This document shows, piece after piece, positions 45,248 through 47,226 of a stretch of 64,000 nucleotides of DNA. The stretch spans positions 16,926,001-16,990,000 of the forward strand of contig NW_027361684.1 of assembly GCF_039654945.1 (NCBI RefSeq). The letters run 5' to 3'. Origin of the DNA: Dendrobates tinctorius (Eukaryota). The translations under genes and the position numbers were made by a program. The notes under the pieces were generated by a model. That model made no database searches, was not told where the DNA came from, and was given only the letters and a program-made list of their open reading frames with translations. How positions within the stretch are numbered: the first letter of the stretch is position 1; the number at the start of each line of letters is the position of its first letter.

Positions 45248-47226
45248 GGAGCAAGAGCCAGCCAGGCGCCAGCCCAACGCCGCGCCAGAGCGGGCCTCAC
45301 AGGGGCTTTTTGATGGGATCAATGCAAACTTTCAACGAAAAAGCTGAAGATATGGTGGATAAACTATTAGAAATGGCCGACTGGAAACAGCAAATTAAAA
45401 TGCACCAAATGTTTGGTAGAGTGACGCTGGATGTCATTGCCAAGATCGCTTTTGCTATGGACGTACATTCTATTTTAAATGAGAAAATACAATTTCCTCA
45501 AACTATCACAAAGGTTATGCAAGGAATGCTTTTATCCCGAGATTTTTTGGCACAGTTCTATCCATCCAAACAACGCTTAATCAAAGAAGTAAGAAAAAGT
45601 CTGGACGTTCTGAGAAAAGAAGGCAAAAAACGCATTCTACAAAGGATCAAAGCTGTTGAAGAAGGAGAAGAGACTCCTAGAGATATCCTCACACACATCC
45701 TTAAATCTGCAGAACTGCATGAAAGCTGCACTCTCGAAGATTTGATAGATAATTTTGTGGCATTCTTCATTGCAGGACAAGAAACGACAGCAAACCAGCT
45801 ATCATTTGCTGTGATGGAATTAGGCAGGTATCCGGAGGTGCTAGCTAAGGCCCAGGCTGAGGTGGATGAAGTTATTGGCTCTAAACGAGACGTTGCTTTT
45901 GAAGATCTTAAAAAACTGCGATACTTGACCCAGGTTTTAAAAGAAACCTTGAGATTGTACCCAACAGCACCAGGAACATCAAGGCTTTCAGTAGAGGAAA
46001 TAGTTGTTGAAGGAGTGAGAATTCCTGCTGGATCTAATGTAATGTTTAACACATATATCATGTGTCGGATGGAGAAATATTTTAAAGATCCTTTGCACTT
46101 TGACCCTGATAGATTCCATCCTGATGCCCCTAATTAGGTTAAAAGTTGAGAGTGAGGGGCCGATTACAGCACAGTGACAGCCAGGAAGATGCCTGAAGCT
46201 CTGTATGTCTCCTCCTGAGTCCTGATCATGGCTGCTCCTAGCACTGTCCTGAGAATGGATATGCCTAAGCGAAGCCACAGAACCTGGCCAAATTCAAACA
46301 CTTACTTTCCGTTTTCTCTTGGGCCACGAACCTGTATTGGACAAGTATTTTCACAGATGGAGGCAAAAGTCGTCATGGTCAAATTCTTGCAGAGATTTGA
46401 TTTCGAGTTGGTTGAAGGTCAAAGCTTTAAGTTTTTTGATACCGGTACGCTGCGCCCCTTGGACGGTGTGGTCTGCCGACTGAAACCCCGGACAGATTTC
46501 AAGACAGCAAAGAAATAAAAATTCCTTCCCTGTTCCCAAAGAAGAACACCTGGACTAGTCCTCATTCATACCAGTATACGAATTCTGAGTTTTTTTGATG
46601 CTCTGTCTCTTGCATCACTGCCAAATATAGTGTTTTTATATGAAAGCTATATCAACCAGTAGAATAAAAGTATCATGTTATTTGTGGTATGGTATAATGC
46701 ATACATTTAAACCGCTCAAAAATCATTGCGTTATGTACAGCAATATGATGGGAGAACACAAAAAAACCCTCATCCTGCAAAAAACAAGCTCTCATAAAGC
46801 TTTGCCAAAGACTCAAAAAGGTTGACTATGGTTACGTGCCGGAAAACCGCTTTAATCTTTGTGAAATTGCCTTTGTCGAAATAGTTTAGAGGAAATTTTG
46901 CAAGTTGCCTCTGTGGAAATTTTGCCGCTGAAAGAAAATAGGGCGAAAGGAAAACACCGGCATAAAAGTAATAAAAATCCCAAATGTAGACTTCCATTTT
47001 TCAGCACTCGTGTGAATGAGGATTTTCCTTGGTATACTTGTAAAATGTTTATACATAACAGTAGGTAAAAGTAATAATTAGTCTAAAGATAAAAGTCAAC
47101 ATTTTGAATGTTTTGTTTTCTTTTTTCAATTTCTCATTGTTTTTTATTGAGCAGAGTAAGAATGACTGTGACAATTTTACCAATAAAGCTTGTATTAATA
47201 CAGAAAAAAAAAAAAAAAAATAAAAA
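45248..47226 (+). pseudogene. cyp46a1: Processed CYP46A1-like (cholesterol 24-hydroxylase) retrocopy lacking the N-terminal ~148 codons and carrying a 156-nt in-frame insert with a stop
   Basis: Intronless [40 protein letters not shown] (heme Cys); 3'UTR, AATAAA and polyA at ~47203-47226; 16-bp TSD AAATCTTATGGTCAGG at 45232-45247 and 47227-47242. Confidence 0.95.

Follow-up and report, generated by a model that had tools for sequence, protein, structure and literature searches.

Within a 64,000-nucleotide stretch of the Dendrobates tinctorius genome, here called the window, positions 45248-47226 of the forward strand read as a cytochrome P450 message that has no introns and yet contains two segments foreign to P450s. 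This raises the question of where such segments come from: from a spliced RNA of the parent gene, or from events during or after insertion of the copy. It also raises the question of whether the locus can be the gene as which it is annotated. The sequence is an intronless copy of a CYP46A-type message. The Pfam p450 domain (PF00067) matches at 45304-46134 (E = 1.8e-55) and at 46282-46515 (E = 6.3e-14), stops are absent within each of the two coding pieces, and the closest relatives are annotated as cholesterol 24-hydroxylase. The components are listed below, where L001 is the locus of the parent gene.

45232..45247, + strand: 5' copy of the target-site duplication (TSD), 16 bp AAATCTTATGGTCAGG, preceded by TT; exact direct repeat
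45248..45305, + strand: leader, a copy of L001:19759-19822 in parental intron 5; from mapping and a GT donor
45306..46133, + strand: parental exons 6-13, fused, frame open, first in-frame ATG at 45313; parental flanks AG/GT
45444, 45555, 45712, 45775, 45848, 45933, 46044 and 46133, + strand: ends of exons 6-13 in the retrocopy; from the parent alignment
46134..46286, + strand: cassette exon, 153 nt, equal to L001:65678-65830 at 100%; AG and GTAAGA flanks in the parent
46287..46356, + strand: parental exon 14, 70 nt, with the heme-binding motif; from the parent alignment
46357..47206, + strand: parental exon 15, with the coding end (TAA 46516-46518) and the 3' UTR (AATAAA 47182-47187); from the parent alignment
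47207..47226, + strand: untemplated poly(A), 20 nt including one T; the parental sequence beyond ...ACAGAAA is unrelated
47227..47242, + strand: 3' copy of the TSD, 16 bp; exact direct repeat

We took an L1-type processed retrocopy to be marked by exact loss of introns, an untemplated poly(A) tail after a polyadenylation signal and a TSD of about 7-20 bp at a TT/AAAA-like site, and all three marks are present. All parental introns are missing, and the 11 junctions are AG/GT-flanked ends of parental blocks. The A-rich tail starts 19 nt downstream of AATAAA and has no counterpart in the parent. The 16-bp repeat flanks the copy exactly, and the TT that precedes it yields a TT/AAA site, which is typical of L1-type endonucleases. 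The limits of the insertion are also visible in contigs that represent other copies of the repeat around it and pass directly from 45247 to sequence resembling 47243 onward. An intronless P450 with a poly(A) tail and a 16-bp TSD at a TT/AAA site, open in frame outside two non-P450 segments, is what an earlier note on this DNA had described, and each of these elements is found. Going by the hallmarks, an L1 reverse transcriptase and endonuclease presumably made the copy.

The site that received the copy (44900-45247 and 47243-47300) is itself a repeat that is multi-copy among the transcriptome contigs (depth 568), and its other copies differ from the window mainly by C/T transitions. The upstream neighbour on the same strand (35313-40025) is the 3' part of a protein-kinase gene (444 aa, Pfam Pkinase) that ends about 5 kb before the retrocopy.

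The best protein match of the retrocopy is "cholesterol 24-hydroxylase-like [Dendrobates tinctorius]" (XP_073433816.1, P0001), with 99% identity. Its gene at L001 lies on a different contig (JAYMGB010000067.1, assembly GCA_039654945.1), contains introns and spans about 67 kb. BLASTN aligns the retrocopy to L001 in 12 collinear blocks that are 98-100% identical apart from the leader, and all flanks of the copied exons are AG/GT in the parent. Using the Ranitomeya ortholog, we located parental exons 2-5 upstream of the first block; thus, the retrocopy comprises exons 6-15 of a 15-exon gene. The order proposed earlier, exons 6-13, cassette and exons 14-15, fits this parent. Compared to L001, the tandem paralog at a distance of 240 kb (P0123, locus L003) has lower similarity to the retrocopy and lacks both leader and cassette, so that L001 is the source. 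L003 also has amino-acid differences that do not occur in the retrocopy, and we rejected it as parent. The other CYP46A matches in D. tinctorius are 56-63% identical to the retrocopy translation.

The parent protein aligns to the structure of human CYP46A1 (2Q9F) over 407 residues (E = 6e-133), and the leader and cassette junctions fall at homologous positions. The parent is one of several frog paralogs. The description of the locus as CYP46A1-like is therefore right as to the CYP46A type, whereas the parent is a frog-specific CYP46A paralog rather than the CYP46A1 ortholog as such. The RefSeq model of the parent has 416 aa and starts inside exon 3. Upstream of that start, L001:6966-7046 and 9944-10033 are homologous to exons 2 and 3 of the 504-aa ortholog; the RefSeq model may be incomplete at the N-terminus, or exon 1 may have been lost from the gene.

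Both non-P450 segments map to introns of L001, collinear with the exons and in the same orientation. The leader (58 nt) corresponds to L001:19759-19822, 234 nt upstream of exon 6. A GT follows it directly, and an AG directly precedes exon 6, which begins at L001:20057 and is canonically joined to the end of exon 5 at L001:12899. Compared to the parent, the leader has lost 6 nt in one deletion and shows one G>A change of the CpG type. The cassette is identical to L001:65678-65830 and lies in intron 13, between the end of exon 13 at L001:60689 and the start of exon 14 at L001:68326, with a pyrimidine tract and AG before it and GTAAGA behind it. Order, orientation, intronic position and canonical splice signals are thus those of alternative exons of the parent. 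This mapping was the test set beforehand in the earlier note, and the outcome agrees with it: both segments land in parental introns, the leader with GT and the cassette with AG and GT, and their junctions coincide with exon boundaries. The leader limits had been given exactly. The cassette had been drawn to 46289, three bases beyond the end at 46286 that the parental splice sites define.

The two junctions had further been placed in phase-2 introns at human codons 148 and 422. In the frog parent, both indeed split a codon after its second base (Ser and Lys). The junction codons align with positions 100 and 374 of the human CYP46A1 chain 2q9f_A, and these correspond to residues 148 and 422 if the offset of that construct is 48, as we presume. 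The human codon numbers thus follow from the alignment only under this offset.

The introns that hold the two segments have been invaded by large insertions. The leader lies within a 5,274-bp insertion in intron 5 (L001:14720-19993), which has inverted ends CAGGGTCGGACTGG / CAGGCTCGGTCTGG and an 8-bp target duplication CTTACAGT / CTTGCAGT; L003 and Ranitomeya (L004) each have the empty site. Within this element, the leader is about 170-235 nt from the 3' end, in a stretch with a GC content of 0.68 and a CpG o/e of 0.8-1.0. The element also contains 32-bp tandem repeats and an internal duplication of about 2 kb (L001:15216-18700), and it has no ORF longer than 141 aa. The cassette lies within a 2,506-bp insertion in intron 13 (L001:65483-67988), with inverted ends CAGGGCTGG and the 8-bp duplication CACAGGAT on both sides, and starts 195 nt from the 5' end of that element. 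This insertion is absent from L003 and from Ranitomeya (L005), and it breaks a satellite of 88-bp units that is unbroken in both.

CAGGG termini and an 8-bp duplication are, in combination, the structural hallmark of hAT-type DNA transposons. Both insertions have inverted repeats at their ends and an 8-bp duplication around them, and for each of them the site is empty in a paralog or ortholog. We call them hAT-like as a structural label only, since no transposase was found in the first element. Beyond the CAGGG termini, no similarity between the two insertions was detected, and no second genomic copy of either was found in the approximately 290 kb of sequence compared. Judged by this comparison of sequences, both extra exons derive from transposons that inserted into the parental introns in a lineage-specific manner. 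The intronic satellite (L001:60949-65482 and 67989-68161, units of about 88 bp) occupies most of parental intron 13 and is also found in L003 and in Ranitomeya imitator (L005), thus it is old.

In our assessment, the locus is very probably a processed pseudogene that an L1-type reverse transcriptase made from a spliced, polyadenylated and non-productive transcript of a CYP46A paralog. At its 5' part, the template would have carried at least 64 nt of transposon-borne intron 5 sequence, spliced from the GT donor to exon 6. Exons 6-13 would have come next, followed by a 153-nt exon recruited from the second transposon in intron 13, and the 3' part would have consisted of exons 14-15 and a poly(A) tail. 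Since the insertion is heritable, the template RNA must have been present in germ-line or early embryonic cells, and we infer that the splice form was expressed there.

The same structure could in principle result if the copy had gained the foreign segments during or after its insertion, by template switching, by later transposon insertion or by gene conversion. That both segments are transposon-derived in the parent, and that the 3' 75 nt of the cassette are multi-copy in the transcriptomes (summed depth 1,887 vs 247), would fit such an acquisition. However, the parent contains the segments in the right order and orientation, and a GT or AG signal stands there exactly at their ends; the cassette matches its parental counterpart at 100%, and the retrocopy contains only internal pieces of the transposons, with neither inverted ends nor duplications. 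We consider gain without splicing extremely improbable.

The RNA evidence consists of assembled contigs from four runs, whose status as RNA is our guess. Of these, X10 and X11 represent a relative that is about 2.4% diverged, whereas X15 is D. tinctorius or nearly so and carries the parental alleles at 45433 and 45441. We rejected the idea that the X10 and X11 contigs stem from the L003 paralog of D. tinctorius, as only 2 of 19 differences are common to both, which points to a related species. Contigs of X10, X11 and X15 contain the canonical exon 5/exon 6 junction at exactly 45305/45306, and this junction is abundant in the RNA contigs of the parent. Contigs of the same three runs join 46133 to 46287 and thereby skip exactly the 153 nt of the cassette. 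The canonical joints fall at exactly the two points at which leader and cassette are joined in the retrocopy.

For the non-canonical form itself, RNA support is thin. One contig of 203 nt in run X22 (46159-46360, depth 4.2) spans cassette, exon 14 and exon 15, with three mismatches and one inserted base compared to the window. X22 contains no other exons, which argues against a genomic library. This contig more likely stems from a divergent parental allele than from the retrocopy, whose youth predicts less divergence. Among the contigs of the four runs, we found neither the leader nor its junction with exon 6, and no junction of exon 13 with the cassette. The contigs of the related species (X10, X11) show the homolog of the cassette only in unspliced form, flanked by intron at either end. 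Of the junctions that the isoform would leave in RNA, the four runs thus offer a candidate for cassette/exon 14 only, in a single low-depth contig.

Both segments are missing from the RefSeq protein isoforms of the parent's cluster. The isoform is thus undescribed as far as these proteins are concerned, as had been claimed, whereas the retrocopy locus itself was already an annotated gene. A protein word search with ORFs across the cassette/exon 14 junction gave no candidate and is uninformative owing to length limits. The same search with the leader translation returned nothing real; the only additional match was P0124 of Ranitomeya. We rejected the N-terminus of P0124 as a homolog of the leader, as it sits in a non-homologous foldback MITE-like element, and the first exon of P0122 as a relative of the cassette, as it is an unrelated short exon. 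P0124 (L004:9900-10300, Ranitomeya imitator) starts in this hairpin-shaped element approximately 370-640 nt upstream of exon 6. P0124 and P0122 are probably artefacts of ab initio models that split one CYP46A gene.

A contig of 1,668 nt in run X11 (depth 20) matches 46247-46286, the last 40 nt of the cassette, and then continues into unrelated sequence. The cassette-like part ends exactly at the cassette donor. This suggests that the donor of this repeat family, as in the cassette, serves as a spliced exon end in another transcript.

What the 5' end of the retrocopy represents is less certain than its origin from a spliced RNA. The leader start may be a transcription start or a truncation point, and we lean slightly towards the former. 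If the retrocopy is 5'-truncated, its origin is the same, but the template began upstream, at the canonical promoter, in a longer or internal transposon exon or elsewhere in the transposon; reverse transcriptase then halted 58 nt before the exon 6 junction, and there is no novel exon 1. Copies made by L1-type machinery are often 5'-truncated. Furthermore, the 5' end of the retrocopy carries no additional untemplated bases, and the abundance of the canonical exon 5/exon 6 junction in the parental RNA contigs also speaks for truncation. An exon-like sequence with an ATG and a GTGAGT donor (L001:19674-19744), 20 nt upstream of the leader start, suggests that transcription could start further upstream. 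Against this, no acceptor AG was found in the parental sequence before the leader start, and the CpG-island-like stretch in which the leader lies is compatible with a promoter. We give truncation somewhat less than an even chance. The earlier note had gone further and taken the copied mRNA to be complete, with the leader as a novel first exon. The copying of a non-canonical spliced RNA is upheld; completeness and the novel exon 1 are not shown, as a longer exon truncated at its 5' end is equally possible.

We next consider the coding potential of the template RNA. An ATG is absent from the leader and first occurs in frame at 45313. The cassette brings four in-frame stops, of which the first is a TAG at 46135-46137, and these make the splice form unproductive. 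Translation from 45313 would yield a P450 fragment of at most 274 residues that, measured against the 504-residue form, lacks about 154 residues at the N-terminus as well as the heme cysteine. A complete P450 frame, with the N-terminal anchor and the heme cysteine in one product, is not present, since the copy starts at exon 6 and has four stops before the heme motif. As the stop is far upstream of two further junctions, the RNA is an expected target of nonsense-mediated decay, and by the established rule the splice form should be sensitive to it.

RefSeq nevertheless annotates the locus as protein-coding (XP_073420937.1, 349 aa, window 45313-46518, one intron). Our reading of the same locus differs: where RefSeq has a coding gene with an intron, we see a dead retrocopy. 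If the annotation were correct, the locus would be a functional retrogene for an N-terminally short P450, from whose RNA the extra segment is removed as an intron. The frame is intact outside the cassette, the heme-binding motif is present and, with the cassette removed, the retrocopy differs from the parent by two residues, all of which would be in line with a functional gene. The model protein is reproduced exactly by joining 45313-46133 to 46290-46518. However, the 156 nt omitted in this way (46134-46289), the same span that the earlier note had assigned to the cassette, have the ends TT..CC and not GT..AG, and the true cassette contains the four in-frame stops. Compared to the 504-residue form, the product would also be shorter by about 154 residues at the N-terminus and thereby lose the membrane anchor, and no retrocopy-specific contig was found in the four runs.

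The intact frame is furthermore expected from the age of the copy alone, at a divergence of 0.2-0.5%. Compared to the assembled parent, the retrocopy has 10 substitutions and 2 indels in about 1,960 nt and is thus approximately 99.5% identical. At five sites (45468, 46404, 46633, 46836 and 46985), the X15 transcript has the allele of the retrocopy, which identifies these sites as parental polymorphisms. Outside the leader, four changes are specific to the retrocopy (45433, 45441, 46660 and 46993; about 0.2%). The alleles at these sites, retrocopy before parent, are G/A, C/T, T/C and T/C. The leader, with a 6-nt indel and one change in 58 nt, is more divergent than the remainder. With a divergence of about 0.5% from the assembled parent, or less when parental polymorphism is counted, the retrocopy is very young, and its near-intact frame reflects youth and not constraint. 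We consider a functional retrogene very unlikely. XP_073420937.1 is probably an artefact of annotation, in which a copied exon is taken for an intron; the retrocopy is not a working gene and cannot make a P450.

The processed pseudogene that we describe has known counterparts. Shemesh, Novik, Edelheit and Sorek (PNAS 103:1364, 2006) reportedly treated processed pseudogenes as a fossil record of splice variants, among them variants that annotation lacks. As in their set, an mRNA copy, here presumably made by L1, records an exon combination of its parent; in contrast to it, the example comes from a frog, is a single and very young copy, and has two non-canonical exons that are both transposon-derived and unproductive. 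The same logic, that retrocopies reveal how their parents were transcribed, appears in PMC7692494.

The cassette resembles known cases of transposon exonization and poison exons, in which an internal piece of an intronic transposon has a good acceptor and donor and brings stops. The leader resembles transposon-initiated chimeric transcripts, in which a transposon just upstream of an exon gives a donor and possibly a promoter. Whereas the classic exonizations in mammals involve Alu and L1, the elements here are non-autonomous hAT-like DNA transposons, by their structure only. Retrocopies that record splice variants, the exonization of transposons and cassettes that carry stops are thus all already known; the locus is a clean example and introduces no new mechanism. 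Current understanding is unchanged by it, as the principles were established beforehand.

For the organism, the finding has several consequences. A protein-coding P450 locus in RefSeq is better read as a dead retrocopy, and its parent has two transposon-derived exons that are carried by no protein isoform of the parent's cluster. The genome of the poison frog Dendrobates tinctorius is very large and repeat-rich, and the divergence of 0.2-0.5% is evidence that cellular RNA was recently retrotransposed by L1-type machinery in this frog. The locus is also a worked example that even splice forms which are unproductive, and probably targeted by decay, occur in the germ line frequently enough for copying. 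A more far-reaching reading, which we regard as unlikely, is that the leader is a germ-line-active transposon promoter, that the cassette is a regulated poison exon tuning the paralog and that the retrocopy is still polymorphic. If it were true, L1-type machinery would be mobilising cellular mRNAs in Dendrobates tinctorius today, and hAT-like elements would be rewiring a recently duplicated steroid-metabolising P450.
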